From contig OZ316899.1 of the NCBI GenBank assembly GCA_973895155.1, forward strand, positions 1,945,573 to 2,009,572: a stretch of DNA of 64,000 bases, given 5' to 3'. Made by a program: the position numbers and the translations under genes. The DNA is from Marsupella aquatica (taxonomy: Eukaryota > Plantae > Marchantiophyta). Below the pieces are notes generated by a model. It was not told where the DNA came from. It did no database searches and saw only the letters and a list, made by a program, of their open reading frames with translations. How positions within the stretch are numbered: the stretch's first letter is position 1; each line of letters begins with the position of its first letter. This document shows positions 12,006-47,564 of the stretch, piece after piece.

Positions 12006-13950
12006 CAAATGTTCTCAGTTTTTGATGGGAATCATCGACTATTTTCATGGACACAAGTTACTAGTGAGAGCCTAGAGAATCCAAAGTATCATCCTCGAGT
12101 GCAATGCACAATCTTCAAGGGGGACAAGGAATCTATCATCGAGATTGAAGCAGCGATGCACATTGTGAACCAGTGAGTTGTCTCTCACCAATGCTTGAAA
12201 CTCTCAAATTTCTCGGTTTCCCTCTGTGCATTCTATGTTCTTTCTGGTTTAAGGGTCTATGTCAGCGCTAGGCGCTATTTCTAATATGCTGAATTTCACA
12301 GGATGGGGCAAGCAGTTGTAGAGTCTTCTTGGATTCTGGACGCGGACAGAACCAGGAGGATTTTGGCACATGATCTTGAATATTATAAACCCATCATAGA
12401 CAAAGCAAATTACGCCAAATTCGAGAAGACTCGGAAAGGGACCCGAAAGGTTCTTGGTTTACTAAGAAGATGCCAATGGAGGCCTTGGTCTATATCCTGT
12501 GTGAGAATAAGATCAAGTCCTACTCGCAGCAGTTCCAGGTGATGAAGACCCAGGCAAGCAATTCCGGTGCACCGTGATCTATCGGAGAGACCAGTCTTTG
12601 TCACAATCAGATGATGAAGGAAGCAACTAAGGAGTGGACTGTGGAAACTCCAAAGCTCACTTCCTTGCTGAGCCCAGAGTTTGAAGATTTCATGGACACT
12701 TGTGCCAAAATGTATAGTCTTACTGATCGGCTGAAACGCGAGAAGGTCCCTGACGCCGTATTCTGCACGATGGATAGAGCTCACTTGTTCACTGCCAATT
12801 TGGCATTAGATCCAAAGCTGCAAAGTACACTTCTCGTTGCTCATTGTACTCCCGACTTACGGAAACAGTTTTTTCATCCCTTTGGCATTTCTGATGACCC
12901 CGTCAAGCAGTGGTGTCACACCTGGCATGTTTGGAATACAATTGAGGGGATAGCCACTGCTCTCTTAGATGCGTCTTTGAACAAAGTTATGGCTTCGTGT
13001 ACAGAACAGCGTCTTTCAACACTGGTCGGAGAGGTCATCACATTTGAGAAGTTGAGGGAAGTGATTTTAGAGGATTTTAGAAAGTACGGTGATTCCGTAA
13101 GGGCCAAGTTCTTCAAAAACATTTGGGAATCCAAGTACGCTGATAAGGAGGATTTGAATGATGTCAACCGCAAGAGAGCAAAGAGATATTTGTATTGATA
13201 TTACATGAAAATGGAGAGGAGTGACCCTTCCTATTTTTGGGCCTATCCTGGTGCCTTCCAAAAGTGGGTCGTTGTAATTTCAAGGTCTGAAGCGTCTGGG
13301 GACTTTCTTGGGTACTCGATGTACCCAGCACAAGGGAAGTTTCCCCCAAGAAAGATGACAAATTGGGAGGTTTTGCATTGTCCATGGTATCTTGACACAG
13401 AGAAATGGAGTTCCCCATTTGATGATACGGAGAAAGATGCTTTCCAGATGTTATCGAAGAATATAGCTCCAAGGAATATTTTGTTGGAGATGAAGCAAGC
13501 GACCAATGAAGAGATACATCGACCGGCCATAGAGCTACAAAGGATTTGCAAGACCCGAGTCGTCCAAGTTGCAAGGAGTCGGAAACCCAGAGCAAAAGCC
13601 AAGCAAGAAACAACCCCAAGTGGATCTCATAAAGAGACCCGAAAGAGTGAGTTCCTATGTTTGTTTTTCTATTTTTGTCTAGTTTCAGACGGGGGTTGGT
13701 TTCTGGTAATGCTGGAACTGCAACACCAAAGCCCTCTTGTGAAATTAGTGTCGGGAAGGATGAGGAGCCGCCTGAAGGGTCGGCAACGCCTGAGGATGTG
13801 AGTGTTCCACCCGTGGATGCAACCAGCATAAGGAGGAAGAAGAAACGTTGTGTTTCTACGTCCACGGGTTCTCAACGGGAAATGCTTGCAGCAATTGGTT
13901 TACAACGGAATGTGGGAGACTTCAAGGGGAATAAATCGAGACATACATTT
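12006..13950 (+). pseudogene. MULE accessory gene, 5' part: ParB/Srx-like domain plus helical region (continues after the Gypsy insertion)
   Basis: FSVFDGNHRLFSW (GxxR-type motif, 12024-12038). In-frame GT-AG intron 12173-12301 containing a palindrome (12263). The reading frame runs into the Gypsy TSD (..NKSRHTF) and resumes at 19870 (..VESTLADFY). Confidence 0.7.
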
Positions 13951-16900
13951 TGTCGCATCCCTAACCTGGGCCTTAAATCTAGTTTAGTTCCATGGCGCAA
14001 CCTCGACCACCAGTAGGGGTGAGGGTTCGGGCAAGGAGGTGTGTAGTAGCCCCGATTAGCCCTAAGTCCGGCTAAGTCTATCTACTTACTGGCATACACA
14101 CTTGCGCAATTTGTACTAGTCATAGGTATATTTGTTTTCCACCGCTGGAATCTTCCCTCAGTTAGTGACTCGGACTAACTCCCGGCTTGGGGCTTTTCAA
14201 GCCATTGACGTGACAGGACCTTGTGACATACAATGGGTGGCAATCCCTACCATTAGTCCGCACCCGGTACGTCCCTTAAAATGGCGCCTTTGCCCAGACA
14301 AAGCATACGCACAACACCAGTTACTTCCAAAAACATTAGAGGGAAAAGACTACATTTACTTAGCGAAGCATCAGTTTACATGGTTGACTCGACTTCAAAG
14401 GGGGTCAGCAGGCCCAACGGCAGTCGATGCCCAGTCTCTACGAGGCCCTGCCTCGCACTTGCCCAGCAAGCTGGACTCTGGCTCTCACTCCTTGGTGCGC
14501 TCTGACCCTACTCAGGCCGGGACTCCCCGTGCCTCACCTTTCTTCTGCTGAAATAACTAAGCCTTCTCCCCCTACCATAGCGGAAGGGGAAGCCTAAATA
14601 CTACAATTGCGGAAGAGAACCGGCGGATACTACCTTCCGGGATACTACCTACTGACTAACTACTTTCTGACTACTGGCCGCGCCGTACTGACTGGTTGAC
14701 CGTCGACGACAAGTGTGCCGACCGGGATGGCAGCGGCCAAGCCTATTGACAAACTCTAGTCCGTTGATGAACTCCATCCTACGTTGGCTGATCCTAACTG
14801 ATCCGACCCTAATTCTTCTTACTGCCGCTAATCGGCGCCTAATGACAGCCATTCTGTCGTTACATCTAACCAAAAGATGCCGCTGACTTAACGGCCTCGC
14901 GCGGCGCTTGCTTCCATCCTTCGCTAACCACCCCTTACGTGTGTACTGTGGTTGGACCAGGGCTGGTCCCCTTGTCGGGGCGAGACCTCGAGCCACCTTG
15001 ATCAGAGGTGGGCCCAGGTTTTCCCCTCTGGAGGACGAGCAGGGTCACACGGTCCTGCAAAGCCTTGTTGTCCCGTACCGCCTCCTCCGCCTTGTTGGCA
15101 GCTTCATCGGCCTCGGTCTGGAGCCGTGCTACCTCCAGGTTGAGCTGGTTAATGGAGTCGCGATGGATCTGGTCCTGCGCCAACAATTTATCCCGCTCGG
15201 TGGAGAGACTAGCCACCTGCTGTGCTGCCTGCAGGAATTGTTTGTTGAGTTCGGTCAGGCTGGTAACCCAAGCCGAAGATTCTGAGCGTAATTGAAGCAC
15301 GGTGTCGTTCAGCTTCTTGAGTTCTGCCTGCGCTCGGCTTAACTCCTGGGTTAGTCCGTCCCTCTGTTCGACGGTGCGGACTAACTCCTCGCGGTGGGTA
15401 GTGGCCTCCTCCTCGAGGTGCTCTACCAGCATCTGGAGGCGCCCGATCTCATTCCCCTTCGCCACGAGTTCTTCTTCCAAGCGGCTTACGATCCGTGGTT
15501 GGTGCTCTAACATGAAGAAGGCTGGTTGAAAGTACGTCGAGACTTGTTGTCCGATGTACGTTGCCAGCTCCCCAGACATAGTCTGGCTAAACTTCTGGAC
15601 CAGGTCGTAGGCCATGGTCCCTGGGGCTACTTGGTAGTCCTCCATCCTCTCGGGTACCGGTGGTTCCTCGGCCGGGGCAACGAGCTCCTCCGTAGTTAGT
15701 GCTGGGGAAGGGAAGGTTTCTTCAGGTGGTGGAGGGATTGGGGGTGGTTGTACTGTGGGTAGCGGAGGCTCGACGGAAGGGGGCGGCGGAATTTCCACAG
15801 GAGGAGGTGGCGGAGTATTAGTCGGGGCTTCCGGCTCGGGGTTTGCCCGAGGAACGGTAGTCCGCGTGCTCGGGGTTGCCTCCTCTGGGGCGGGGGTGAC
15901 ATTAGCCGGGGCTGAGGTGGCCATATTCTTTCCTCTGGCCTCCCGCCGTGCCTTGTACCAGGCGAGGATAATGGCGATATGACTTCCCAAGTAAGTCTTC
16001 CCCCCAATAGCCATACCACCCTGAGCCCGCTTCAGCTCCCCTAAGAATCTTCGGTAGAAGAATTGGGCCCAGTTTCACCGTTTGTACTGTTCCACCTGCA
16101 CGATCGTGCAGAGGGAAATTTCGGATCGTGGCTCAATCATGTATAGGGTAGTCTGTATGAAGTTAAGCCGCTCCATGCAGGTTAAGTTGGTGCACGCCCC
16201 CTGCTTGTATCCGTTGTCCGTCTTACCCTCGGGTTTGAAGTGTCGCGGTGTATACTCCTTATCCCGAATTCGGATTTCAACCGGCACCGGCCCGGTTGGT
16301 AGGCAGAAGATTTGCGTTAACCGATGCTCTGTGAGTGATAAGGCCTGCCCCGAAACCTTGGTGGTCGACGCGTCAGTGTCGAAATTGGAGATGAACTCAC
16401 AAATCTCCTTTGGCCCGGCGGCGCACGGCCTCCATAGCAAGTGAGCGAACTGCTCCAACTGATGCTCCTTAAGATAGTCCGTGTGTTCGAGTTTCTTGAT
16501 CACAATCCAGACTACTTCGGGGACGCGGATTACCTGTAATAAGTTGGACTTCGGGTTATCCGAGGGCCGTCGGGTCTGGTTGGTCGGGGGGTTTGCCGGG
16601 GCAGGTGCAGGCGCGGCGTTGGTTCGCATTGTTGATTCGGGGGCCGTCGCAGTTCTTGGCCGCTTACGAGAACGCTGTTCGAGTTGCGGACTAGCTCTCT
16701 CAGAACCCAAAGAACACTCTATGTTGATTACTGGACGGACTTGGGACCGGTTCGGCGGTACGCCGATGGTCATCGGCTGAGGCACTGGTGGTATCAGGGT
16801 AGCCATATCCCAGTTGAAGGCGCTGGAGCTTTCCCCGAGGAACGTAAGATTACGCGCCGCTTCCCATTGTCTGCTGATATCTTCTTGGCGCTTTTCGGCT

Positions 16901-17804
16901 GCGATCTGCTGGTCTAGGTACCCTGGAATCTTGTCGAACTCCGCTTGAGTAAGCCGCTGGGTGCCCTTCAGCTTAAAGAACTTTGCTGGAACCTCAAGAA
17001 TCACCTCTGCTACCGATCTAAGCCCTTCCTCGCTGAGATATAGTTCGGTGATATAGTCTCGCAGCTCGTTGTAGCTGGAATCCCTGGTGATGGCTATCTT
17101 TTTGCAATTAACCAGTGCTACCTTGGTCACCAGCTTTGCGTATCTTCATTCGTAAGCGGCTTTCTCGGGGCAAGAGTACCAGTAAGTCTCGGAGAACTTA
17201 GCACCTACCTCGCCAAACAAGGTCCAAAATCCCAAGGCTGTGAGGGTCATACTAACCTCGTAGTCCGGTTCGTTGAGTCCACGTTCCCACCCGGCTGGTC
17301 CTTTTCCTCGTGGAGGCCTCGCTCGTCCTGACTAAATCTCGCCACATTCCGCTCTTCTCCCTCGATAATCTCCTTGTAAAGGTCGACTTGATTCGATCAG
17401 AAAGGCGAGTGGATGGCAACGTCCGTGAATTCCAAAAAAGGTAGACATGAGCAAATGGCCCGCAGCGCCATCGGCTCCTCTCTTATGGAGGTGCCAGGAT
17501 GAGCCCGAGCGTGAGAAGGCCAGGCCGTTTTGGTCATTGATATTGAGCTGAAGTCGACTCCTCGGTCCAAGCGTGATTCTTCTAACTGATTTTTACTCTG
17601 CTGCCGCCACCGTACCTCGGTCGCGCGTAATAATCCTCTTCCTGAACTCGTAATTATTTGGTCATCTTAACCTACTCCTAATCTAATCATAATGGCAACA
17701 GACGGCTATACGTGCTATTCTACGCTATGGCTACGGTCCTAATGCCCGTATAAGGCCTAATCTACGACCTGGGTTCGGTTAAGTGACACGTTACCCGTGT
17801 CACA
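13951..17804 (-). repeat. 3' LTR of Gypsy family 1 (3854 bp), containing a long ORF
   Basis: Begins TGTGAC immediately after the PPT AAGTGGGGAGCTA. Its first 158 bp (17647-17804) match the element's outer end (19712-19869). Ends ...GCGACA at the TSD. Confidence 0.88.
14935..17130 (-). pseudogene. LTR-internal ORF of Gypsy family 1: plant-mobile-domain/Athila-ORF-like region, Pro-rich linker, coiled coil
   Basis: ORFs 16075-17130 and 14935-16014 are in frame across one TGA (QYKR*NWAQFF). Motif EFISNFD...KVSGQALSLTEHRLTQIFCLP. C-terminal heptad-rich segment. Confidence 0.7.
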
Positions 17805-19691
17805 TAGCTCCCCACTTAAGTGTGAAGCATCCTCGCAAACATCATAATGCTCCTTGTCCTGGTGAAAGTACCTCTTCACACGATCGTAACTAACTCGATT
17901 GGGAAAGAGGTCGCCGGCGTACGTTGATAGCTGTAAGGATCCGTTCGGGTACATCTGCTGGACAACGAAAGGTCCTAGCCAGCGTGTGTGTAACTTTCCT
18001 GGAAAGTACATGTACCTACTGTCGTACAGAAGGATGAGATCTCCCGTAGTGATGTCTACCTGGCGCAGTCCTTTGTCGTACTGTTTCTTCGTTGCTTCTT
18101 GCTTGGCAGTTATGCGTCGCGATGCCCACAATCTCTGTTCTTCTAGACTGTCGATTTTATATGCTCGATCGGATGTACTAGCGGCCTCCAGTAGTCTGTG
18201 GCGGATGCGCACCCGCGGGGTCTCGACCTCAAACTCGACGGGTACTAGCGCATGTTGTCCGAACACCAAGAAATACGGACTATGGTTTGTTGTAGTTTTA
18301 AACGCCAAGTTGTACGAATAGACCGCCGCGAAAAGCTTGTCGTCCCAGTCTGTTTTGTGGGCTGCCACGGTTTTGTTGAGTATTTTCCCTACAATGCCAT
18401 TAGCCCGCTCTGCTAGTCCATTACATTTGGGATGATAAGGAGTAGTCTTCCTGTGCTTGACGAGGTAACGATCAGTCAATTTTGCCACCGTTTTGTTCAA
18501 AAAATGAGTCCCGCGGTCGCTGACTAATTCCAAGGGAGGTCCAAAGCGGGTGAAGATCTGTTCGTATAGGAACCTGGCGGTGGTGGCCGCGTCATCCTTG
18601 ACCGTTGCCCGGGCCTCGACCCATTTAGTCGAGTAGTCGATAGCAAGAAGGATGTACCGGCAATGCCGACCTCGGGTTACAGGAGTGAATGGTCCGATAT
18701 AATCGATGCCCCATTTCTCAAACGGGGCAAGGGGAAAGATTGGGGTAAGAGGATGATTACCCGATCTGCGAGGTTTGCCTGCGCGCTGACACAAGTTGCA
18801 ACCTCGGATAAAATGGGCTACGTCATGATGAAGCGTAGGCCACCAATAACCTGCGTCCAAGATTTTGTGAGCCGTGGTGACCGGGGCGAAGTGTCCTCCT
18901 GCCTCTTCCTCGTGCATAGCTCGCATGACAATGATCGTTTTGTTATAATCTAGGCATCTGCGGATCTTCCCATCGACGCCCTCCTTATGCAGATGTCCGC
19001 GGATCATCATGTACGGTGTGGCCTCTTGGTTTATGTTACTTGGAATGCGGGCCGTTAAGAGGAAGGTGATTAGGTCCCCGTACCAGATTGGTTGGTCCGT
19101 TTGTACGCGGAATAATTCTTCATCAGGGAATGCATCATCGACAGGTGCATCGTCTGATTCCCCTTCAATCCTCGAGAAGAAGTCCGCATTTACGTGAGCT
19201 TTCCCTGGTCACACCCTGACTTCGTAGTTTAAATTCTTGGAGCAGCAGGACCCAACGGGCTATTCTCCCCGTTAGGTCTGCTTTGTTTACCATGTACTTT
19301 AGGCTGTCATGGTCAGTATGGAATACTACCTTATATCCCAATAGATAATGGCGAAACTTTTTACACGAGTAGATGATTCCCAAGGCCTCCCGATCGGTGG
19401 GCGAATAGTTTTTCTCTACGGCAAACAGTTGTCGGCTCGCAAAGTAAATGGGGTGGTCACATTTTTCGTCGTCCAGTTGGCTTAGGACTGAGCCGATGCA
19501 AAACCCAAACACGTCGACATACACATGGAACTCCTTGTTCCAATCGGGGGTAGTCAGAATCGGAGCCATCGTTAGCTGTTTTTTTAGTTCGTCAAAGACT
19601 GATTTTCGACGGGGAGTCATTTCTATGACTGCGTCTTGCTTCATCATTTCTGTGAGGGGTAGGGCTATCTTAGCAAAATCCTGAATGAATT
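17757..19691 (-). pseudogene. pol: Gypsy family 1 pol remnant: RT end, RNase H, integrase
   Basis: FIQDFAKIALP; APILTTPDWNKEFHVYVD...PIYFASRQL; integrase HHCC zinc finger, PFEKWGIDYIGP, SDRGTHF, PKCNGLAER; no chromodomain. Confidence 0.93.
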
Positions 19692-19869
19692 GTCGGGTCT
19701 GGTTGGTCGGGCTCGTAATTATTCGGTCATCTTAACCTACTCCTAATCTAATCATAATGGCAACAGACGGCTATACGTGCTATTCTACGCTATGGCTACG
19801 GTCCTAATGCCCGTATAAGGCCTAATCTACGACCTGGGTTTGGTTAAGTGACACGTTACCCATGTCACA

Positions 19870-21410
19870 CATTTGTGGAGTCCACCTTGGCAGACTTCTA
19901 CGAGAGTGTGTTCAAGCGGGAAGAGAAGCCATCATGGGTTGATCGGGTTGAGAGCTGGGGTAAAAATCTGGTTAAGTCGGGAGCCCGTGCGAAGGGGATA
20001 ATCAGAGGGGGTAAAGTTAGGGCATTTGGTGTCGATGCCGGCTTTCTCTATTGCCAACTGGGTTGAGACCATCTCTTCTAGACAAAAAAATAACCAAATG
20101 GAATTTGCAAGACCACTCTCTTCCATTCGCTTTTTTTAGCGCAATGGACCCTTTCCTTTCTGACGATGGACTTCTGGCTATTCTTCACACTGGAGAGTAC
20201 AATCAGATTTCGGAAGTAATATCTGCATGCCAACAATCTCAGAAGTTTTCCTGTACTGCCTTGCATACAGTCGTCATGGGGTTTCCTATGTACAAACCTA
20301 AGTCTGATACTCAGGTAAGAATTATCTGCATTACTTTTTGGCCAGCGCCAGGCGCTAATATTATGTATCACTATGCTAGTTGAAATTGTTTACCACGATC
20401 TCACTATTATTTTGTTTTCAGATCTTCACGCTGAGGTTGGATATATTCGGCCGTGTTTCAAGCAAAACTTCAATCCCCAAAGACCCCAAGTTTTGTCCAT
20501 TGTCACCCTCCGAAGATCCCTCTGTTACAAATCTTATAGGATTTCCGTCTTTAAAGACTGATCCAATGCCAGACCTTGTGGCCTGTGGAAACGGAAGGCT
20601 CATAGTTGGGTTTATGCAATCTGTCATAGAGCTCATCTCCTATCGTGGGGATATTTTCATTGACTGGACCGCTTGTTCGGGAAGTTCATTTGTGGAGGGA
20701 GACTATTGTGGTAGATTTGTTACTGGTGTCGAAGGGGGGCGAGAGTTTGTGACTGCTGCAAGATTTATGCTAGATGACATTTTGGAGCCAAAGTCAACTT
20801 TGACTCCGGAGAAGACAATCTCAAGGAAGGGGAAAGAGAAGTTGGACAGAGATAGATCAATTTTAAACTTTGATTCTGAAGAAAGCGAGCCGGATGTTGT
20901 TGGGGAACCTGATGAGGAAGATGTTCCCATCGTTGATCTTGGAGATGACAAGGAAGAGAAGAGAAATCCTTTGGGATCAGAATCTAAATCTGAGGATGAG
21001 GAGTCTTCTCAATAATGCTCGGAAGCCCGATCCAAATCCATGACTGTTTTCAATAAGATATTTTTACATGTACAGAGTTTTAATATCTATGCAAACTTTC
21101 AGGTCGGAGTGGAATATGCGGAGAAGGAATATGCAGAGAAGGAGACCTTCGGAAAATGATTGCTGAAGCATTGGAGATGACACCAGAAAAACCATTTATC
21201 CTTCCATCATACGCAGAGAAGGCGGCCAGAAAAAGTTGAGAGGTGCCAAACATTGTCTTGGGAAACAAAGGGCCTTTGTCTAAGGAGAGGTTGTGATAGG
21301 AAGTTTTTGGTGAGGAGGTTTGTGGATGACATTTGTAGAAGTGAATTTGTGGACGATGAGGCAGAATCTACCGATAGGTCCGAGAGTAGTGAGGCAGAGT
21401 CCTCCGATTA
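19870..21410 (+). pseudogene. MULE accessory gene, 3' part: beta-class amino-DNA-methyltransferase-like domain plus acidic tail
   Basis: FFSAMDPFLSDDGLLAILH (motif V-VI-like) and IELISYRGDIFIDWTACSGSSF..GDYCGRFVTGVE (motif X-I-II-like, D at 20662). In-frame GT-AG intron 20315-20421 containing a palindrome (20343). Frameshift at about 20051 at the expected motif IV position (GFLY/LPTGL). Confidence 0.7.
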
Positions 21411-21439
21411 GAATAGTTTCCAACATGCACATTTGTTAC

Positions 21440-21535
21440 ACAATTTCATTGTAAACCAATTTCAAGAATCCACATATAATAAATACTACAATTTCATTGT
21501 AAACCAATTTCAAGAATCCACATATAATAAATACT
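21440..21535. repeat. 48-bp tandem duplication in a 3' UTR-like region
   Basis: ACAATTTCATTGTAAACCAATTTCAAGAATCCACATATAATAAATACT x2. Confidence 0.9.
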
Positions 21536-21692
21536 ATGTTCTCGGTTTATTTGCGTCATTGGTGAGGTTCAAGTTCTATTGAATCTTGAATCTCTATAAG
21601 TCTAGAGTTTTAGAGACTTATACAGAAAATCATTGGATTATTTTGACCTAGATTGGGAGGGAATATTTTGAATTCTTGGGACCTATGTTGGA

Positions 21693-23074
21693 TAGCGCCA
21701 GGCGTTAGCCAATTTTTTCTGAGTTTTTGTTAGCGTCGGGCGTTAGCCAAAAAGGTGTGTATCGTGGATATTGTTACCGTTGGAGTCTATTGATAGGCAG
21801 CAGATATTGTCCAGTGGTCGTTGGTCGGCTTCTAGTACTGCTGTTAAATGACTATTTTATCCCGTCGTTAGGTAGTAAAAATGGGAAACCCTTAACCTTG
21901 ATTTTTATATATTTGAATTGTCGGCCTTTTCAAAAGACACAGTTAACGCCAGGTTTGTTTCCCAGTCTTTTATGTTCTCATCCATCAGTGATGACAATTA
22001 CTGTTTCACTTTGATAGCGCCTGGCATTAGCCAAATTGTCTCTTATGCTGGTCTTTGGATCCGTTGTCAGGGATTGTTACCGTTGGAATTCTTGTTGATT
22101 CTATCAGATTTTTTTCCTCCTCATTGGCATTGGGCCCTTCCCACCGGTAACTACGCCTATACAAGGAATGAGATCCACTTCTGTATCCCCAAAACTTTAT
22201 GGACGTTGTTCATAGAGAGAGTTTTTGTTTGGGTTTACAGCGCTTTTTTCCTTTTCCGTTCCTCGTTTCGCATCATTTGAAGAAAGTGAGTCATTCCATC
22301 CTGATTCCAGAGTGATGGAGCATCGAGTCCCAAATGTTGGTAATGGTAGGGGCGCAAGGCCACCGCGCCATGTCCCGTTGTTGGTGGCGTAATCAGAACT
22401 AATCTTTCATCCATATCCATTGTGGACAATGAGAGTGTCATGACAGAGACATCGGACATTTGAAATTGTCTTTTCTTGCCTCGTGATGAAGGGATGAGTC
22501 CTAGGGATCAAAACATTCCATGGCTTCCCGATTCTCCCCCTAGACCATTTCAAGAACGTTTCTCGATTCACTATCCCACTCCCCAAGATCCATCAACAAA
22601 TATTGATTGGGAAGTTGAAGTGCGCACTGCGGAGTTCCTTGGGCGTGTTGATTTCCACAACACAAATTGTCCAGGTCCTTCTTCCTCAGTTCCAGCTCAA
22701 AGACTTCCGAGTCAACGATATTCCCGATTTCGCACATTTGGTTTTCAGCAAGATCGCTATAGAGCAAAAGCAGGGGTGGACGATGAATGTGGATCTTCGT
22801 GCAATCCTAGATCTTGAGAAGGACGCCATAGTTTTGAGTAGCGCCCGACGCTAACATGGGCAGTCATATCGCAAAGACGATCCCTCGGACTCTAAGTTTG
22901 GATTGAGTTTCTAGCCTTAGTGACATTGAGTTCATATTTGTCAGTGAGGATTTTCCATTGTATTACCCTCGGACAAGCCGGTCGGCAATATGTTCAGCGA
23001 TCCTAGATCTTGAGAGGGGAAGATCTTGGATCTTTAGATAGGAATGATATGGTTTTGAGTAGCGCCCAGCGCTT
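21693..23074. repeat. Five degenerate TAGCGC-N3-GCGCTA palindromes near the right side of the MULE
   Basis: Copies at 21693, 21731, 22015, 22839 and 23060; the last two lie in an old duplication of about 200-240 bp (22805-23240). Confidence 0.8.
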
Positions 23075-24402: not shown

Positions 24403-24404
24403 AT

Positions 24405-36857: not shown

Positions 36858-39800
36858 CTACTTGTCCATCCTTTGAAGATAATTTTGGACAGTTTGTAGA
36901 ACATTTCGAGGGATCTTCAAACCTCTGCCCGCCATGTTTTCTTCTTTCATTCCAGATTTAAAACCATAAATTGCAGAATTTGCATACTGCCAATGTTGAG
37001 TATTCTCACCAAACCCTGGATCTCGTTCCCATGTCTTAGTGGACATGAAACAATTTAGATACCACGCACTCTCAGTCACATCAAGTTTAGAGTGTTTAGG
37101 CCTCTACCATTCAACTGGGAATATTGGAGCGTACTGTCGAGGCAGAGAAGGGTTTGTTGAAGATGTAGTTGGGACTTCATGCTTTGGGTCCACCAAACCC
37201 AAAGCTCTCACCAACCAGAAATGACCTCCACCATTTTTATTCTCACAATCATCCTCAGGTCGAAGAAATACAAAGTTTCCTTCACAAATATCCTGTAAAG
37301 GAATCCATCGTCCTTGTTCTCTCTCAGCTCGAGATCCAACAAATGGTGTTGCTTGATCTTCCATCTCTTCCAAGACCTCATTTTGAAGAGCCGTTATCTC
37401 TGCATTCTCCTCATCTTCACTTGGAGGACCACTTTGTTCCGGTTGGTTGACCTTGTAACCAGTGCCGTGGTTAGTCTTAGGCCAAAATCTGTTTTTCAAG
37501 GGAAATTGAGTACTTCCCTCCCCTTCTAGTGCGAGCCCATTTGTCAACAACTCCACAATTCTCTCCCAATATTTCACAAGAGGAAATCTTTCCTTATATG
37601 CTATAGATGTCTCATCAGTGCAACTCATTCTCAAAAAATCAAGGTACTTGTTAAGAAATGGGATAATCTCTTCAGATTTTTTGTGTATCTCTCCAATGGA
37701 TTTAGCTAAGGGCTCTCCACTAGGTAAAAGAAGAGAATTTGTTGTCAGATCTGTTGCCCAAATGCACCTTCCACCAACTGGCCCCCAAGCTTGCTTTACA
37801 TGGGACTTATACTGAAATATTGGTACATTATCTCTCATAGAGAAAAGAAATGATACAGGTTTTGAGTGACCTTGAATATCTTTCACCTTGAAAGTTTGAA
37901 GATATTCTTTGTAAGATGCAACTTCTTGTATCAATCTGGGAACTGGATGAATGCTCTCGCATTCCCATACCTTTGCCATAAGAGCAAGGAGGGTTGCAAC
38001 TTCTTTGTGCTGAACTTGATATGATACCTTTGAAAAGAGTGCATCAACATCTTCGTGCATATGACCAACCATTAGAAAAGACATTTGAACAGTTTCAAAT
38101 ACTCCTCTACTCACAAGCTCGCTACAAAATGCCATGACAGTCTGGTTTTTGTTGTCCTTTGCTGAATTATCCATCTGCAATGTTAGGTGCCTTGGCAAGG
38201 GCTTGAACGATGGACTGCCTTGCTCTCCTTGCATGTCTTCTCCTTCATCCTCATCTTGTTGGTTTGGGACGGTCTCAGTCCGACTCTCAGCTCCATCTTC
38301 AGAACCAATATACCTATTCATCGGTATATTCTTTGGTTCCAAATAACCCGTAAAAAATGCTTCAAAGTCAAGTAGGGCTTGAAAGAAAGGTCTGTGAGGT
38401 TCCCAATGAAGGCCATCCAACATGTCACCTGTCTTGTCTCCATTGTACTCTTCAAGGTCTCGAAGACACTTAGCCAAGGATGTCACTATGAAATCGGCAT
38501 CTCCTGGCCAAAGGCCAATGACACTAAAGTGTGCATAAACTCCTGGATCCCTCCCGTGGGTCAACATCGCTGTGAGAGCAATAGGTAGCGGCATTCCATG
38601 ACCCGAAAGAGATTTAGGAGTACTAACCATTTTTGGAATCCATGTCTTTGCTTGATCCATCTTGTCGTGAATAATGCAAAGATATTCTCTTGGGTGTTGT
38701 TTGGCCATCACTCGATGAGCGTAGTAAACATATCTACGTGACATTTGCTCACGAAGATGTTGCGCTCGCTTTTCTTCAATTTCAGCACGTTCTTTTTTCC
38801 TTCTTTCTCGCATCAAACTGTCTTTGTATTCACAACAAAGAGTACACTTGGCAAATGCACCATCTTTATGAAAACTGAAGTTTGCAAATGAGTTGCTCCA
38901 GATCTTGTAGAGAGTATTCTCTGTGACAGGAGGAAGCCCTTCTTCCTTCATCTTTGTTCTCACATCTTCCAGAATCTCTAGCTTCTTGTAACACGCCGGA
39001 AGACGGTACTCAGTAGAGTCTGTCCCATGTGCCCCTCCATAAGGCATATGAGGCATGGGCTCTGCATTTCGAGTCAAAAAAGCCTCCAACAGAGCTTGTG
39101 CATGCAAGGTATTTGCCCTTGTTTTCATCAAGCCCGTATTGCCATGGAACCCAATTTTGCAACCCTCCACATATCTCCTTTTGTAATCATAATATTTGGT
39201 GTGGCTAAAACCGTGGATAATTGCAAATGCATGTCTGCATACGACCATACCCTTAAGAACATGGTGTCCCTTATCACGAACATCATCCTCTCTATAGTGA
39301 AAGAGGTTGAAAATGTGTGACGTTTTTGACTCGCTTGACATCCCATGAAATTCCATCCTAATATCTTCGATGTTTTCCCTTGGCATAATGAGACAACATT
39401 TTTGCTTGCAACAATTTTCTCTTTTCACGTCATCAATTGACGCCTCTGTTGTTTTTGGAAATTGCCTTGGTTTCCAACAACCTCCTCTTCTTTTCATTTG
39501 GATCTACTTGATTCCTCTTGTTGAAATTGTACAGCCTTGAACACAGTACTCCTCTATCACTTACATCCGCATTGAGTTTATCCCTATCCATTGAGTCCAT
39601 CCTCTCAGAACCTTCCACCAAAATGTCTGACAAAAATTTTCCATTTGCAACTAGTTTTGTTGAATCAATCCGCCATCGAATCAAACTCACTACTCCCTTG
39701 TGGATGTTGGGAAAGTATTGTGCTGCCACGACATCTTTCACAGCAATCCCAACATGCTCATCACCAAGAATTTCATCATCAACTGCTGCTGTCACTTGAG

Positions 39801-40640
39801 GGACAATGATCGTTCCAGTGGCAACCATTTTGGTTTGATCCAAACCAGTGTAGAGTTCAACCAACTCTGACATCCAGTTTGCCCGATGAAAATAGTCACA
39901 CTTAGTGTCCGTGGTGTTCGCCGAACAAGACTGTGAAACAAAATTTGCCTTGTCCTTCTGCTTCTTAGAGGAAGATTTGTTGCTCCCATCAATATCAACA
40001 TTCCATACTTTATTGTGGACGTCAACCACATCCCATAGAACCCAAGAGCCCTTTGCCTCTTCAATTGTTGCAGCTCCACCATGTGCGTAAGGTAAAGTCT
40101 TACTACCATGAATCACATCTGTGACTTTTACACTAACCCGAGACTCACCGAGTAATATGTTATGACATCTCTCCATTGGATCGGTCTTGAAAACAACTCC
40201 AAAGGCCACACAATGGCCAGAGATAAGCATTTCAACCTCATCGTCTGGCCTTAGGGTGGTCGAAGCATCCTCCTCTACATTTGCAAAATTATGATGTTGT
40301 TATCTTTTCGAGTCGAACAACTACCAATATTGATGCGTTTTTGAGTAATCTTATCCGCAGATCGATATGCACATGACATATCCCAAATGACACATGAGTC
40401 AATGGCATCATGAAGATTTTCTGCCCTAGGCATTGGAAAAGGGAGCTTCCTAGTCTCACCAAAGGCCTTCTCAATGAGAACCCCAATTCGATTCTCTCCC
40501 AGCACAATATTTTGAACACTCTCTCGCGGATCTGTCTTTTGAACTGTCCCATTTCCAACGTCGTAACCATCGATTGTCAAGGTAACATCATCGCCCCTAG
40601 AAAACCTTTGAGACATCCTTTTCCTATTTTCCTGCACACT
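36858..40640 (-). pseudogene. Sola-type transposase with three N-terminal TNP1/En-Spm-like domains and a C-terminal beta-rich domain; two frameshifts and one stop
   Basis: IIHDKMDQ, LQMDNSAKDNKN, FLMVGHMHEDVDALFS, preceded by FAKCTLC. ORFs 40275-40667, 39433-40230 and 37104-39497 join by frameshifts. 36858-37079 continues in frame after TAG (VEW*RPKH). Confidence 0.85.
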
Positions 40641-40689
40641 GAAAAAATGGATTAAAACCAACCTCATGCAAATTTTGATTCAGAATACT

Positions 40690-41425
40690 ATCCTCCAATT
40701 TTGGATTTGGACTAGGACCATCCGAGTCCGGATTTGCACCGGGACCATCCAAGTCTGGATTAGGACTGCAATCCTCCGAGTCTGGATTTGGACTACGATC
40801 CTCCGATTCTGGATTTGGCCTGGGACCATCCGAGTCCGGATTTGGACCGGGACCATCCAAGTTCGGATTTGGACTGCAATCCTCCGAGTCTGGATTTGGA
40901 CTACAATCCTCCGATTCTGGATTTGGACTGGGACCATCCGAGTCCGGATTTGGACCAGGACCATCCAAGTCCGGATTTGGACTGCAATCCTTTGAGTCTG
41001 GATTTGGACTACGATCCTCCGATTCTGGATTTGGGCTGGGACCATCCCAATCCAAACTTGGACTTGGACCATCCCAATCCAAACTTGGACTCGGACCATC
41101 CCAATCCAAACTTGGACTCGGACCATCCCAATCCAAACTAGGACTCCGACCATCCCAATCCAAAGTTGGACTCGGACCATCGTAATCCAAAGTTGGACTC
41201 GGACCATCCAAGTTCAAACTTGGACTCGGATGATCCCAATCCAAAGTTGGACTCGGACCATCGTAATCCAAAGTTGGACTCGGACCATCCCAATCCAAAC
41301 TAGGACTTGGACCATCCAAGTTCAAACTTGGACTCGTATGATCCCAATCCAAAGTTGGACTCAGATGATCCCAATGCAAACTTGGACTAGGACCATCCGA
41401 ATCCAAACTTGGACTAGGACCATCC
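40690..41425. repeat. 27-bp minisatellite built on GGACTCGGACCATCCCAATCC (imperfect palindrome); probably intronic
   Basis: Unit GGACCATCCCAATCCAAACTTGGACTC and variants. On the minus strand it is flanked by a GTGAGT donor (about 41630) and TTTCAG/TGCAG acceptors (about 40640). Confidence 0.9.
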
Positions 41426-42289
41426 TAGACCAACCCATGATGTAATGGGAGATAAACTTCAAACATCTTAAGCTGAGAAAAATCCAAATTTAGGAAGACC
41501 CCGTATTTTACGGATCTCCCTAGATATGGTGTAGCCTAAAGTTTGCGTGGTCCTAAGGCAGACCCTAATGTCTACATACAGTTTCATGAAATAATGGAAC
41601 CTTATATTTGAATGCATTAACCTTATACTCACCTTAGTATTAAGATCTGGTAGAAGATGAATATCACATCCAAGGGGTATACATTGTTGTTTGAATAATG
41701 GTAAAAACTTCCCAGAACCTTGAAATACAAGCTATATGCCACTAAATCTTGGGAGTAAAAAACAAACTGAACCCTAAACCACACATGTCTCTAAAAGATA
41801 AACTGAGAGGACTCCAAAAGTCAAGAAGCTGGCTAAGCTGACCCAATGAAGGTAAGTGGCTCAATACATAACACTTTAAGAGAAACTCCACTCCGGATTA
41901 CATGGAGCTTAGATTTGGGAAACTAGAACAAGAATGAGCTCCGAAGTGGGCGTCTCCCAAATTATACCCTTTGCTCGAGTCGGCTCAACCGGAAATCGCG
42001 TGAAGATAAGGGTTGAGTACGCGTTCACCTTAGCTTGCGGACACACCTTATCTTCACGAGCCTAATTGCGCGGGGACTACCATGGAAGGCTGTTAGGTAG
42101 GCAGGACATCAAGGAAGGAGGCCGTATGCAAGGTGAGGGCAACGGGCCGTATGCAAGAGCAGGCCGTACGCCATAGCAGGCCGTACGCAGTAGAAGGAGG
42201 CAACCGGCCGTACACAGGCCGGGGTGAGGCAGGAGGGGGTAAAGGGACGGAGAGGTCCAGCCAGGACCTCATTCTCATTCTCTCACTCC

Positions 42290-42400
42290 TCGCTCTCTCG
42301 CTCTCTCGCTCTCCTCTTGCTCTCCTCCTCACTCTCTCGCTCTCCTCTCGCTCTCCTTGCTCTCTGCTCTCCGCTCTCTCTCCGCTCTCCATTCTCTCTC
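42290..42400 (+). repeat. CT-rich microsatellite in the divergent promoter/5' UTR region between transposase and cargo gene
   Basis: CTCTCGCTCTCTCG-type low-complexity tract. Confidence 0.8.
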
Positions 42401-42687
42401 TGCCTCCCCGCCTCCGCCTGCCTCCGCCTTCCACCTTCCACCTTCCACCTCCATTCTTTTTTATTGCCCTAGATCGGACGCCTGCTAAGACGCCACGTGT
42501 CACGCTGCCACGTGTTAGAAAGATGGAAGTGAATCGCGTCCTTGTGATGTCCTACATGGAAGAAACAGAGGAGTTTGACCTCTCCTCTATGAGCGACAGT
42601 GTGGAACTGGCACTCGAAGACTCTAGATAATTTCAATCACGAATCCCTAGTAAGTATCTATCACCTATCCTCCCTAAGTCTTAGAGG

Positions 42688-42870
42688 ACTGGGACCATCT
42701 GAGTCCAAACTTGGACTCGGACCATCCCAATCCAAACTTGGACTCGGACCATCCCAATCCAAACTTGGACTCAGACCATCCAAATCCAAACTTGGACTCG
42801 GATGATCCCAATCCAAACTTGGACTCGGACCATCCCAATCCAAAGTTGGACTCGGATGATCCTAATCCAT
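42688..42870. repeat. Second array of the same 27-bp minisatellite, in the first putative intron of the cargo gene
   Basis: About six units of CCAAACTTGGACTCGGACCATCCCAAT following a GTAAGT donor at about 42649. Confidence 0.88.
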
Positions 42871-43245
42871 CTGGGAGATTGAATCCCGATTGTAGGAGCA
42901 AGTCTAAAACCATCTCAAGTTGGACTAGGACCATCCTAATCCAACAAGAGTTATTCGAATGTTTTAAAGGTTTCAAGTCTAACATGGATGACGTTTATGA
43001 TGCAGGGAGTGATCTTGTTGTTTTCAAACCCGCGATTGCACCGACCCACTGCCTGGATGGATTCTTACTAGATGAGAGATCCCCACGCTTTCGATGGGGG
43101 CTTGAGTTCTCAAGAACCCCGCTTAATAATGAAGTGCCATCAACCACGATTGAACCTGTTTTGACCTTAAAGTGCAGAGAAAATGATAGCCTGACTTTTG
43201 TTTGTTTGCGGACCTGTGGTCTCTGTTGGCATTGGAGGGAGAGGG

Positions 43246-46200
43246 ATGAATACGGTCATTCTCGACATGCACGATAAGTCCTGTTGGGTTAAAGTTAACC
43301 TTCTGTCAAAGTCATACTCCTTTGAATTCAATGTCGAATGGCACGCAAGTGGGGAATTGAGCGTTTTGTCAATGGGATTTTTTCCAAAGACCTATGACAC
43401 AAAGAAGTTGGTCGCCGGGGTAACTGGTATGCTTCCAGTCGACATTATGTATGGGTTTCAATATTTGAAACTCAACATGATGAAGCACCAAGGCAATTTT
43501 TCTTTTGCAACTACCTGGACATTAAGCAATTTACTTGAGAAAGCTGGATTGTTATCGTTGGAGTCGGAGGAGCCTGGTGTTTTAATTGATAAGGATGTTG
43601 CATTTGCTCCCAAGTTTGATTTAGTCAAAGCAAAGCAATGGATAGAATCTTTGTCCAAGATGAGAAAGCTTCCAGCGGTGAATACAAACCCTGTGCCCGA
43701 GAAAGCGCCAGAGAAAGCTCCAGAACCTACAATAGAGACTGCGGGAACTACAGCAGCGACCTCTCAAAGAGCAGTGGGAAGACAAAAACAAAGCCAAAGG
43801 AAACCTCCGGTTGAGAAGAAACTTCCGGTTGAGAAGCCGAGTACGAGAAGCCAAGTTGAGAAGCCAGTTGAGAAGCCGAGTACGAGAAGCCGAGTTGAGA
43901 AGCCAGTTGAGAAGAAACGTCCGGTTGAGAAGCCGAGTGCAAGTGAAAAGAGACCAAGACAGAAGAAGAAACAGAAAATTGACAGTGCCATCATGGATGA
44001 CACTACAGAAAACCTGACAGTGCATTCACAAGATGTGGACGAGCAGTTGGACGCTCCTGAGGAGAAGAAGGTCTTAGAAGGTAATGAGGTATTGCAACAA
44101 ATGGAGCAATATTATACGTTTGGGATCAATTTGATATTTTCTATTCCTGTAGACAATATTTTCCCTGCGTCGGCAAGACTCTGTTACAGAATGTTGAATG
44201 CAGAACATGTAAAGGAGGTGGCCAATTCCATGATAAGAAATTCGGGGCATGAACCACACATAGCAGACTTGATTCCTTACACTACAAAACATAGAAACCT
44301 AATGTAGTATGACAACACGGAATCAGATAGGAGGGACTTTGTAGCAGCCATGAAAAAGGGCGAGGTTCAATTCCTTGCCATTAGCGGTCAACATTCGGCT
44401 AGAGCAGCCAGATGGATTCGAGAATGGGCAAACAAGGATGCCAAGCTGACAGCATTGGCGAAAAAGCTGGAATTTCGAAAGTCAAGAATATTATCTCATC
44501 AAACACCATCGTCAATATTAGTTGAGCATTCAATGCGATCTAATGCGATCAATAGCACGATGGTGTTTCAATCATGCTTCAAAGATACAGTTGTTCATGC
44601 TAGGCGACAATTTGTGGAATGTGGAAAACCTAGCCGGCCAAAACATGGGGACAACAAAACAAACGCTCAAGACAATCAAAAATTTCAGGTACGAAGTGTT
44701 ATTGCTTGATGGGTACAATACCGTAGATTCATGCACATTCAGTAGAATATTTCCACTGATATCGCCTAGTTTTGCGTTGGACCGGGATGGTCCCAGTCCA
44801 AATGGATTCATGCACATTCAGTAGAATCTTTGTCCACTGATATCGTCTAGTTTTGTGTTGGACTGGGATGGTCCCAGTCCAAATGGATTCATGCACATTC
44901 AGTAGAATATTTCCATTGATATCGCCTAGTTTTGCGTTGGACTGGGATGGTCCCAGTCCAAATGGATTCATACACATTCAATAGATTATTTTTCCACTGA
45001 TACTGTCTAGTTTTGTTCTGGACTGGGATGGTCCCAGTCCAAACTAAATCATGCACATTCAATAGAATATTTCCACTGATACTGTCTAGTTCTGTGTTGG
45101 ACTGGGATGGTCTCAGTCCACACCTGAGTGCTATCAAACAATTGAGTTATGGAGAACTAATAGACTTTCCTTTGCAATTGTAGGATTGGTTGGCGCTTGC
45201 AAGAATGACCATGGGAAGGAAAGATTGTCGAAATGTTTACTGGTTACTGTTTGCGGACGATGCTCTTTTTGAGTTATGGAGTTTGGTATGCCAGTTGTGG
45301 TTGGATGGGAAACTTCCCGATGGAGCTGGGGTAGAAGGAAATGAGAAGTCTGAAAAAGCAATTACTGTTGCCATGTTTCGTTGTTTTGATGGTGAGTTGA
45401 TCTCACAACGAGACATCACAAGAATACTGACGCGGGTGAAGTCAGGAAAGGTATTGCTAAAGAAAGATGCCTCTAATAAATCAGACATGCCATCTATAGA
45501 GGAGTTGGCCAAAGATGTGAAGATCGTGCGGAAACTGAAGTCCCTTATTGAAGACTACTATTGCACCAAGGATGCGGTGAATTTCCCGGCAAATACTAAT
45601 TGGGGGAAAGTAGTGGAGGTTCTTCCTATGCTAGCAATTGATTCAGAGTTCAGCAGGTGTCGAAGAGCCGCTGGCGAGGTCTATCTTGCCAACCTTTTAA
45701 AACCAAATCATACGCGGGAGAGCGCAATCTTGCCGACGGCATTGGCATTCCGCCTAGATGATATATACTGCCAGAAATTTGGCGGAGGATCACGTTCTCG
45801 GACCCTACCATGGGCTACATTTTTTAGCGACAATCTCATGAAGACCATTGATCCAGAGTCATTGCAAGAAGCTCCTCCAACCTGCCCTCTTGCCATTGTT
45901 GATTTTAGCCGGCTTCCGCAAAAACAATGGACTGAAGCAGAGATTCTTGTTCTCTTTGAATACATTGTGGAGCTTCCACAAAATCCCATGATTGTTGTGA
46001 CGATAACAGTTCATCCTGGACAACTTGCATTGAATATCCATGGTGCCCTTCGTAAACTGGGACAAGAGAAACCTTTGACCATTCACATTGAGTATGGGAG
46101 TTATTCTCGAGATGATCAACGGCACCCTCATGACTCATGTTGGGGTGGGGGGATTGAAGAAGTTATCTTTGCGGGGATTTCTCGAGATGAAGACGTCAAT

Positions 46201-47564
46201 TGGAATGAAGTTTTCAAGCCCAACTATCCAAAGCCAAAATTCTTGTATACTGCAAAGGATGTTGATTACGAAGTATGCAAGATCGACAAGGGAAAGGGGA
46301 AGGCTAAGGAATCAGATGAGGGGACACAAAACGACGACCTAAAAGTGGTTTTGGACCCGGAAGAGGCCGTCAAGATTATGAATATGGCCCATTTGAGACA
46401 GTTGGCAGTCGCGGAGGGTGGATTAATCCTCATGCCAAACCCACGCGGATGATCCGAAGGATTATTGAATCCTTGTCAGAACCGGGAGATTTGGTTCTAG
46501 ATTTTTTCTCCGGTAGCCAAGTCATGAAGACATCATTTTTTTGCGATAGGGAATGCTTTGTTTATTGTGACTCTCACTCCGAGAGGCATTTTGTGGAAGC
46601 TTTTGCTTCCTACCTTTGCGAGAGAGTTCCCTCACTTAAAGCTCATTGTGAATCACTTGCTGAAAATTCTTGACAATGGGCTACCACTGTTGCGGCTGTA
46701 GCTGTCGCTGTTGAATCCGATGGTTCTGAGTCTGAAGATGTTGTTGACAAAGTGGCTGAAGGCGTAGAGGCATCAGAGGAGGCATATGTCATGAATTTGG
46801 ATGACCGTGTTGGTCAAGGTGAGCCTTACGATGTAGATGATGATATTGGACTTGCACCAAACCGTTCATCTGGTTTAGATGACATCCCTCCGGGGCCCAA
46901 TGAAGTTCAAGTTGATGATAACTTGGACAAGGATGATCCCAATCCAACAACGTCGGGAGGACAGATGGAGCAACTGGAAGGAGCAAGGGTTGATACGTTT
47001 GATCATCTTTCTTCAACCAATCTGATCAATGAAGGCGCAACGAGGCTCGGAGATTCAAATGAAGCTGAAACTAAAGAATTGACTCGGGGGGAGACCGAGG
47101 GGGAGACTGGCGGATTGCCTGACATTCCGATCAATCCAGGAGGAAATGCATCAACGGCTGCTGACAACCAGATAGGTGCTTCAACTTGTCCTGACACACT
47201 CTTTTCAGCTTCTGATGACAAATTGGTGTTCGTTCGTTCACACTCGGGGAGTCCTATTGTCCTTCCGCTCTCAAAAAAGAAAGGAAATAGAGTTGGATCA
47301 ACTGGATGGAGGTCATTGGAATGCGATGCACGATGTTACGTGTGGAAAAGTGGGCCAAATCGAGGCCAAGAAATATCATTGGATGCTGCTCCTTCAATTC
47401 TCAATAAGGAGGAGTATAAGAGTGGAGAATTGGGGTTGATAACTCCTGTTTGGACTTCACCTTATTGGGTAGAACAAAGTACTTCAGATGTCAATTTTGA
47501 AATCCAACAGGAGCTTGGTGCTGACATGATTATTGATGAATACGGATCTCTTATTTTGGAATGA
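43246..47564 (+). pseudogene. Sola cargo gene 1: N-terminal domain, Lys/Pro-rich linker, ParB/Srx-like domain, amino-DNA-methyltransferase-like domain, acidic tail
   Basis: IPVDNIFP...YRMLNAEHVKEVANSM...QFLAISGQHSARA (44383-44397). Phase-0 GT-AG intron 44689-45183. NPR|MIRRIIESLSEPGDLVLDFFSGS (motif X-I, D at 46500; 1-nt frameshift at about 46447). In-frame stops at 44305 and 46671. The start may lie further upstream (about 42524). Confidence 0.75.
44726..45121. repeat. About 80-bp intronic tandem repeat x5, each unit with the hairpin TTGGACTGGGA-TGG-TCCCAGTCCAA
   Basis: Hairpin copies at 44777, 44858, 44937, 45018 and 45097; those at 44858 and 44937 are perfect 11-3-11 inverted repeats. Confidence 0.93.

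Follow-up and report, generated by a model that had tools for sequence, protein, structure and literature searches.

Proteins that join a ParB or ParB/sulfiredoxin (Srx) domain to a beta-class amino-methyltransferase are known from phages and bacteria. The closest described examples are the ParB_N-N6_N4_Mtase fusions of ParB-terminase loci in phages and prophages, and the methylase that adjoins the large terminase gene of Wolbachia phage WO was verified as ParB_N plus N6_N4_Mtase. Eukaryotic methyltransferases acquired from phage ParB-linked loci have also been described, including ParB-HTH plus chlorophyte-type Dam proteins in chlorophytes and chytrids and haptophyte clade-6 methyltransferases from ParB-terminase loci (Iyer, Zhang & Aravind 2016, PMC4738411). 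Here, a 64,000-nucleotide (nt) stretch from the liverwort Marsupella aquatica (contig OZ316899.1, positions 1,945,573 to 2,009,572; the whole stretch is referred to below as the window) was analyzed, in which an initial annotation made from the letters alone had reported two spliced ParB-plus-methyltransferase genes, each in a different DNA transposon. These are gene S (43195-47564, plus strand) and gene M (pieces at ~11955-13950 and 19870-21410). On balance, we lean slightly toward an interpretation in which gene S is a defunct copy of a gene carried as cargo by a 12,951-bp transposon with terminal inverted repeats (TIRs), its family descends from a phage or bacterial fusion of ParB with an N6/N4 methyltransferase and is now noncatalytic, and gene M is separate. 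An architecture familiar from phages and bacteria appears here as cargo of a eukaryotic cut-and-paste transposon.

The phage fusions have the same domain order as that predicted for the S-family protein and gave its best whole-length structural matches. The S family, in contrast, is eukaryotic and transposon-borne, and its proteins are two to three times longer, with an additional helical insert of ~220 amino acids (aa), an acidic tail, and a C-terminal domain; SGQHS stands in place of the Arg box, DF[SAG]R stands in place of DPPY, and phage ParB_N profiles do not detect the family. The eukaryotic cases of Iyer et al. likewise came from phage ParB-linked loci, but they belong to other clades and architectures (Group 2 Dam-type, FHA fusions), were not described as DNA-transposon cargo, and were not reported to have lost DPPY. 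N4CMT of bdelloid rotifers and MpDN4MT1a/b of Marchantia share with the S family a horizontally derived N6_N4_Mtase fold in a eukaryote; they are host genes with a catalytic (T)SPPY motif (PMC8885841), whereas the S family lacks (T)SPPY, has a ParB-like domain, and resides in a transposon. METTL14 resembles the S-family protein in that a methyltransferase fold with a degenerate catalytic motif is kept under selection, in the S family as a putative nucleic-acid-binding scaffold, and inactive methyltransferase domains have been reported in DIRS1 elements (Iyer et al., PMC4738411). However, these domains are of the MT-A70 and PCIF1-like classes, whereas S is of the beta-class N6_N4 type, and, unlike in the METTL14 case, no active partner methyltransferase was seen in the S-carrying element. 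Finally, the S gene might be likened to VANC of the VANDAL transposons, which are Mutator-like elements (MULEs), as an accessory nontransposase gene possibly acting on the epigenetic state of its element through repeats; VANC, unlike S, is neither methyltransferase- nor ParB-like.

The transposon carrying gene S and its cargo

The window consists of repeat-rich, eukaryote-type DNA with nested retroelements, and relatives of its genes were found in the liverwort Riccia sorocarpa and on contigs of ENA, JGI, and Logan. The exact ends of the S-carrying DNA transposon (36263-49213, 12,951 bp) were obtained by comparing an interrupted long terminal repeat (LTR) with its intact sister. These LTRs belong to a Ty3-like retrotransposon and are unusually long (~4.3 kb): the left LTR (32271-36262 and 49214-49513) is broken by the 12,951-bp insertion, the right LTR occupies 56129-60483, and the internal region lies at ~50594-55580. 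The identity between the left and right LTRs was 95-99%, and therefore the S-carrying transposon inserted recently. When the filled site was set against the empty one of the sister LTR (60184-60187), a 4-bp target site duplication (TSD), CAAC, was identified on the left (36259-36262) and right (49214-49217). The left 24-bp TIR, ATCAATCTATTCATTAAAAGTGTA (36263-36286, plus strand), is the reverse complement of the right TIR (49190-49213) with 2 mismatches. TIR, TSD, and empty site around 36263-49213 bear out the earlier view that gene S is transposon cargo. Ten subterminal copies of a repeat of ~15 to 22 bp, AAAGTGTACATTTGG, which has a palindromic TGTACA core, lie at 36320-36607 on the plus strand; among the 14 window matches to this repeat (0.21 expected), 13 were located at the two ends of the transposon. 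The subterminal repeats at 36320-36607 and 49107-49165 share the plus orientation, and the palindromic core AAATGTACATTT is present in one copy.

The minus strand of the transposon contains an open 797-aa transposase-like open reading frame (ORF) at 37104-39497, which matched Pfam DUF7869 (PF25273, E = 4.2e-40), and, upstream of it, an ORF at 39433-40230 with a weak TNP1 match (E = 0.0015). A 27-nt tandem repeat of ~23 register-shifted copies (40637-41446) lies within the minus-strand ORF upstream of the transposase, and a block related to it is present at 42641-42856, just upstream of gene S. The plus strand holds gene S and an ORF similar to NIF/FCP1. The element had been labeled Sola. A 4-bp TSD was reportedly described as a property of Sola elements by Bao et al. 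(2009), and the 24-bp TIRs, the CAAC duplication, and the empty site in the sister LTR agree with a TIR plus 4-bp TSD. The element is therefore compatible with a Sola-like identity; the label itself was not borne out by any domain match, as the transposase matched only DUF7869 in Pfam, and a search of the open-access literature found no paper on DUF7869.

Gene S begins with a variable, basic, low-complexity N-terminal region (43195-44088) that aligns with the N termini of family members. It continues with the ParB/Srx-like domain (44089-44688; IPVDNI ... AISGQHSARAA), which was matched by the family hidden Markov model (HMM) with E values of 2e-25 and 5e-35 and whose predicted fold is that of the homolog P0078. 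After a 495-nt GT-AG intron (44689-45183; donor CAG/GTACGA, acceptor TAG/GATTGG), the region 45184-46389 (family HMM, E = 7e-124) covers a middle domain that is alpha-helical, together with the first half of the methyltransferase fold, in which VDFSR stands at the place of DPPY. The next piece (46380-46670) contains methyltransferase motif X (NPHAKP), a motif I variant (DFFSGS), and strand beta-2, and it matched Pfam N6_N4_Mtase (PF01555; E = 2.7e-8, 34.5 bits against a cutoff of 26.7) and an HMM built from five phage methyltransferases (E = 7.8e-11). A tblastn search with this piece found 485 phage records, and among the matches listed almost all were annotated as DNA methylases. The gene ends with an acidic disordered region and a small conserved C-terminal domain (..YVW..GPN.G.. 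..EYGS..; 46674-47564; HMM E = 9e-13), and its C terminus aligns with the C termini of P0078, P0001, P0006, and P0017. All of these parts are on the plus strand. The peptides originally quoted for gene S were all located: IPVDNI... in 43195-44304, SGQHSARA in 44308-44706, and NP..MIRRIIESLSEPGDLVLDFFSG in 46320-46670.

In the alignment, gene S was colinear with its intact relatives from the ParB-like part to the final residues. The 495-nt intron is in frame, and its removal restored the frame and colinearity with P0078 and P0001, which are intronless; the description of gene S as spliced thus holds for the window copy and not for the intact relatives. A 160-bp sequence repeated three times in tandem (44726-45205) occupies most of this sole intron, which, being absent from relatives, may be an insertion that became spliceable. 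The reading frame is interrupted by a nonsense codon within the ParB/Srx-like domain (44305-44307), by a 1-nt frameshift near 46388-46392, where the frames overlap, and by a second nonsense codon directly after the motif X-I piece (46671-46673). With these lesions, the window copy of gene S is dead, a pseudogene whose single intron is genuine.

The S family is a rare family of proteins of 900 to 1200 aa. A phmmer search of 1.8 billion representatives returned 75 relatives, mostly fragments, and intact intronless members were found on metagenome and Logan contigs; the open members included P0078 (1009 aa), P0083 (1219 aa), and P0001 (901 aa). The ratios of nonsynonymous to synonymous substitutions (dN/dS) between lineages were 0.30, 0.21, and 0.30, and therefore the family has been maintained as a protein by purifying selection. 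Two loci, L001 and L008, carry copies that are 97.3% identical, one intact and one broken, which is the pattern expected of multicopy repeats or element copies; by dN/dS, their differences were near neutral and uninformative about selection in active lineages. No TIR-like or subterminal motif was found in the short homologous contigs L001 to L005. In Riccia sorocarpa, a divergent S homolog with several introns and the motifs SGAHS and ADFAR was found at L009:10001-12830 (CM100799.1, KAL3682925.1); it may be a relic or have undergone domestication. Downstream of it lies an LTR-retroelement integrase, neither a DUF7869 transposase nor a NIF gene occurs within 10 kb, and the annotated gene KAL3682925.1 appears to end before the methyltransferase motif region. 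A further Riccia locus, L007, contained just two small middle-domain fragments of the family. A limited literature search found no open-access paper describing this transposon-borne family, which is apparently undescribed.

Directly downstream of gene S, at 47707-48840 on the plus strand, is a gene with a NIF/FCP1-like phosphatase fold (Pfam NIF, E = 2.4e-13), in which motif I reads DLN in place of DxD. Every contig long enough to tell was checked for this neighbor together with the window, and a NIF/FCP1-like gene lay directly downstream of the S gene in all six loci (the window, L001:3572-4510, L002:3339-4154, L004:4047-5132, L005:4520-5605, and L008:3988-4629). These neighbors share ~39% identity. 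Motif I was LD(L/C)N, i.e., DxN rather than DxD(T/V), in five of the five sequences that covered it, and hence the partner is likely a binder of the phosphorylated C-terminal domain (phospho-CTD) of RNA polymerase II (Pol II) rather than a phosphatase; it may be a pseudophosphatase.

Fold and catalytic state of the S-family protein

Residues 55 to 770 of P0078 were modeled with AlphaFold2 from a 69-row alignment, with a mean predicted local distance difference test (pLDDT) score of 88.9. When the model was compared with the PDB by Foldseek, 31 of the 43 matches with E values of ≤0.001 were beta-class N6A/N4C DNA methyltransferases, including CcrM (2.6e-6), M.PvuII, M.RsrI, TTHA0409, M1.HpyAVI, M.MboIIA, rotifer N4CMT (PDB 8s9n, 1.6e-4), and M.BceJIV, and the remaining 12 were METTL14 chains. 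The family profile also matched M.RsrI among the PDB sequences (E = 3.7e-7). The permuted motif order, IV ... X-I, was apparent in the model, in which a strand plus DFAR (438-444) precedes both the helix of motif X (616-626) and the strand of motif I (632-636). On the predicted structure, the S-family protein was thus shown to have a Rossmann beta-class amino-methyltransferase fold.

In the BFVD, the top two Foldseek matches were phage proteins of ~500 aa that aligned over 655 to 713 columns, essentially the whole query, with E values of 5.2e-8 and 1.8e-7. One of the top matches was named ParB/Sulfiredoxin, several further matches were annotated ParB or Spo0J, and phage fusions of ParB/Srx with a methyltransferase outscored methyltransferase-only targets. 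These matches support, though not completely, a predicted ParB/Srx-like N-terminal domain fused to the methyltransferase, with a helical domain inserted. The full architecture would comprise the ParB/Srx-like N-domain, in which SGQHS replaces DGQHR/GxxR, the ~220-aa helical insert, the beta-class fold, the acidic stretch, and the C-terminal domain. The phage- or bacterial-type methyltransferase fold that had been proposed for gene S was accordingly recovered by the model, Foldseek, and Pfam, the proposed ParB/Srx-like domain was supported by the whole-length BFVD matches, and the earlier view of the architecture was largely right.

The absence of DPPY from gene S had been noted before, and it extends beyond the window copy, which has VDFSR. 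In ~30 aligned S-family sequences, the window copy included, VDF[S/A/G/T]R replaces the catalytic (D/N/S)PP(Y/F/W) motif, and because the replacement is family-wide, the loss of DPPY is old and conserved. Decay of the window copy as the cause of the missing DPPY was therefore ruled out. On the cofactor side, motif X (NPxxKP) and motif I (DFFSGG(Q/I/A)VLK) are conserved; the Asp after strand beta-2 is mostly kept, and in the FxGxG of motif I the position of the second glycine is shifted. The ParB-like box of the family, (A/V)(I/V)SGQHSA, is without the Arg of DGQHR/GxxR (the canonical CTP-binding motif being GERRxR, where CTP is cytidine triphosphate). Taken together, the motifs suggest that the S-family protein is probably a noncatalytic pseudoenzyme, much as METTL14 is next to METTL3, that would still bind nucleic acid and perhaps also the cofactor. 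Gene S had been proposed to encode a methyl-marking enzyme; this is probably wrong, as the conserved VDF[S/A/G/T]R argues for a noncatalytic role.

An active enzyme would require that the S-family protein methylate DNA or RNA amino groups with a noncanonical motif IV and mark its element in the manner of VANC or N4CMT. The intact fold, the conservation of the cofactor-side motifs under purifying selection, and the presence of real N4-methylcytosine (4mC) and N6-methyladenine (6mA) enzymes, rotifer N4CMT among them, in the nearest structures are in accord with such an enzyme. However, the change from DPPY to DF[SAG]R in ~30 sequences takes away the two prolines as well as the aromatic side chain stacking on the flipped base, the FxGxG of motif I lacks one glycine, MpDN4MT1 by contrast retains TSPPY, and Foldseek also matched METTL14, the inactive partner of METTL3. 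An active methyltransferase is therefore improbable; if the protein does still methylate, it would provide plants with a mobile source of 4mC or 6mA.

Several observations weigh against descent from a ParB-methyltransferase fusion, loss of catalysis, or carriage by a transposon as family traits. Catalytic loss is deduced from motifs only. No sequence profile detected ParB in the S N-domain, for which Pfam yielded just DndB in one member (E = 0.019), and neither an HMM of seven phage ParB_N domains nor hhalign gave a match to it. Modeled alone from 6 sequences, the N-domain was poor (pLDDT of 51.7), with weak matches to Noc/ParB (E of ~1), so that the ParB assignment is one of full-length 3Di alignments with uninspected residue mapping. 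In addition, tblastn of the N-domain against phages returned unrelated genes, its profile gave only spurious CFA/I pilin matches among PDB sequences, and PADLOC gave no ParB signal. Linkage of the S gene to a transposase was seen in the window only, the other contigs being 4 to 6 kb, and the Riccia homolog P0072 has introns and neither a transposase nor a NIF gene within 10 kb. Binding of the S protein to element repeats and its cooperation with the NIF-like protein are speculation.

If the noncatalytic interpretation is nevertheless followed, the S protein would bind DNA through its ParB-like and methyltransferase-like domains, perhaps at the palindrome-cored subterminal repeats of the element, and perhaps also S-adenosylmethionine (SAM). 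Together with its NIF/FCP1-like partner, it may influence how the element is transcribed or silenced, or how the transpososome is assembled, and not deposit 4mC or 6mA. The architecture is under purifying selection despite the replaced catalytic motif and is paired with a gene that also lacks a catalytic residue, which suggests that phage DNA-handling domains have been repurposed into an accessory system of the transposon. If S does act on silencing or transcription, it would be, besides the unrelated VANC, a second kind of epigenetic countermeasure encoded by a transposon. The intact genes (P0078, P0083, and P0001) allow direct testing.

Gene M and its relationship to gene S

The two parts of gene M are separated by a minus-strand, 5'-truncated Ty3-like fragment (13951-19869) with RNase H-like, integrase-like, and extra ORFs, which was recognized from its ORFs and a GC jump; its boundaries are approximate, and the integrase and RNase H identities were judged by eye. 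In the first part, an exon at 11955-12172 contains FSVFDGNHRLF, with DGNHR at 12024-12038; the strict motif DG[NQH]HR has a single occurrence in the window, compared with the 0.03 predicted by shuffling. The motif is conserved in the locus L006, the only relative found, which has 76% nucleotide identity and is itself degenerate. It is followed by a putative 129-nt GT-AG intron (12173-12301) that contains one copy of a 15-bp palindrome, TAGCGCCNGGCGCTA, and by middle coding pieces within 12302-13950 (12302-12539, 12611-13195, and 13199-13798) that show frame changes and a stop at 13196; a short putative GT-AG intron before 12611 was read from the sequence. In the second part, an exon at 20021-20314, which is possibly the central strands of a methyltransferase fold, lies upstream of the methyltransferase-like segment; this exon gave no profile match, and tblastn of 20021-20380 against phages found nothing. 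A putative 107-nt GT-AG intron (20315-20421), with a palindrome copy at 20343-20357, explains the change of frame before the methyltransferase-like exon. The segment at 20605-20757 contains the motif X helix, motif I (DWTACSGSS), strand beta-2, and a Glu (GVE). The pieces listed are all on the plus strand. The peptides first reported for gene M were found, FDGNHR in the frame of 11880-12173 and IELISYRGDIFIDWTACSG...GRFVTGVE in 20380-21012. Its putative introns at 12173-12301 and 20315-20421 are GT-AG and frame-restoring, as judged by inspection only, while stops and frame changes remain; both gene M and gene S, with its two stops and frameshift, are pseudogenized in the window, as originally stated.

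The methyltransferase-like part of gene M was compared with an HMM of five phage methyltransferases that had been chosen through gene S and not through gene M. This HMM ranked the gene M segment second among 1,998 six-frame window segments (E = 0.005; E = 0.27 for the next segment), hhalign of the segment gave an E value of 4.6e-4, and five PADLOC MTase_II models matched it (E = 0.009 to 0.035). The segment was 35% identical to the methylase of Gordonia phage GMA4, a verified N6_N4_Mtase, over 51 aa without gaps. The tblastn search against phages gave 21 weak matches (E = 0.3 to 9), and 15 of the 17 annotated ones were DNA methylases, in register, while two control queries, the S N-domain and the gene M exon, matched unrelated genes. 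The match is limited to ~51 to 61 aa covering motifs X-I-II. Judging from these comparisons, the segment at 20605-20757 is a methyltransferase-derived, genuine but short remnant.

Chance resemblance of noncoding or unrelated sequence to a methyltransferase and to DGNHR would fit the absence of any Pfam or NCBIfam match to gene M pieces, of any PDB sequence match to the methyltransferase piece by phmmer, and of strong individual tblastn matches. It is nevertheless very improbable: an HMM built without reference to gene M placed the segment second in the window, five separate PADLOC models matched it, the weak phage matches were methylases in register when the control queries matched unrelated genes, and the ungapped 51-aa alignment spans motif X, motif I, and the Glu after beta-2. 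A motif IV region was not detected in gene M. Furthermore, ParB was not found in gene M by Pfam, NCBIfam, PADLOC, phage tblastn, the phage ParB_N HMM, or hhalign. Of the reported ParB-plus-methyltransferase composition, the methyltransferase half was thus upheld as a short segment, and the ParB half comes down to the five residues DGNHR, with no profile match.

The placement of gene M in a MULE was not sustained by the searches made. The sole sign of a MULE-type transposase was a SWIM-like CxCx(n)CxH motif (7339-7413, plus strand), found by regular expression and reading by eye and broken by a stop at 7375-7377; MULE-like strings were also seen by eye. No ORF piece of 3692-7536 had a Pfam match, including to MULE (PF10551), and between 1-4000 and 20900-26500 the repeat finder, blastn, and Smith-Waterman alignment found no inverted repeat longer than ~25 nt, nor was a TSD found. 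The palindrome TAGCGCCNGGCGCTA, however, occurs at 18 sites against 0.04 expected, all within 1914-23074 (e.g., at 2020, 3421, 3485, 3550, 7640, 12263, 20343, and 21693). These include the SWIM-like region and two putative gene M introns, and the palindrome was also found at L006:233-255. The palindrome may be a binding site or the mark of one large element, and its distribution is compatible with such an element spanning the SWIM-like region and gene M.

Gene M could instead be a host gene that has decayed, or a methyltransferase gene acquired horizontally long ago, situated near a SWIM relic and hit by a retroelement, in which case the pattern of two transposons would be a coincidence. This would agree with the lack of a MULE Pfam domain, TIR, or TSD and of any similarity to gene S, and with the scarcity of relatives: among 5.8 billion protein clusters, one relative of a piece from the middle part of gene M (12302-13950) was found (P0085, a 176-aa fragment with 54% identity) and none of a second piece, and two metagenome scans with gene M pieces found none. 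We consider it rather unlikely, as the 18 palindromes in the SWIM-like region, the introns, and L006 suggest one unit, and the degeneracy of the L006 copy is as expected for a repeat.

A module shared by gene M and gene S had also been proposed. The S-family HMM found no gene M piece in the six-frame window, also with filters off, and neither hhalign of gene M pieces against the S family nor BLASTP of M against S showed similarity; gene M had greater similarity to ordinary phage methyltransferases than to gene S. With no specific similarity between M and S, a common mobile module is therefore not established, and from these comparisons independent captures, or an extremely old split, appear more likely than a shared module. 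If gene M is also transposon cargo, it would be an independent capture that is more decayed and was split by the Ty3-like fragment. A broader scheme can be imagined in which bryophyte transposons carry a two-gene pseudoenzyme cargo: S would bind palindromic repeats, possibly with SAM or CTP, and the NIF DxN protein would bind the Pol II phospho-CTD, tethering the transcription machinery or blocking silencing, and unrelated transposon superfamilies would have taken up phage-type ParB-methyltransferase genes repeatedly, with gene M as the second case; occasionally such genes would have been domesticated, as with the intron-containing homolog in Riccia. We regard this scheme as doubtful.

Nested retroelements

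The Ty3-like fragment that splits gene M contains two large extra ORFs (14935-16014 and 16075-17130). A 158-nt direct repeat with 98% identity is present just past the integrase-like ORF (17647-17804) and at the end of the fragment (19712-19869). Gag-like ORFs that include a CCHC zinc knuckle occupy 9047-11024 (minus strand), between the SWIM-like region and gene M, and are probably a further nested retroelement piece. Long ORFs were also seen inside the LTRs of the Ty3-like retrotransposon that received the S-carrying element, e.g., at 34393-36000 and 57030-58265. At 30384-32288 on the plus strand, a copia-type gag is accompanied by an integrase-like fragment that was identified by eye; they are truncated by the left LTR at ~32271.

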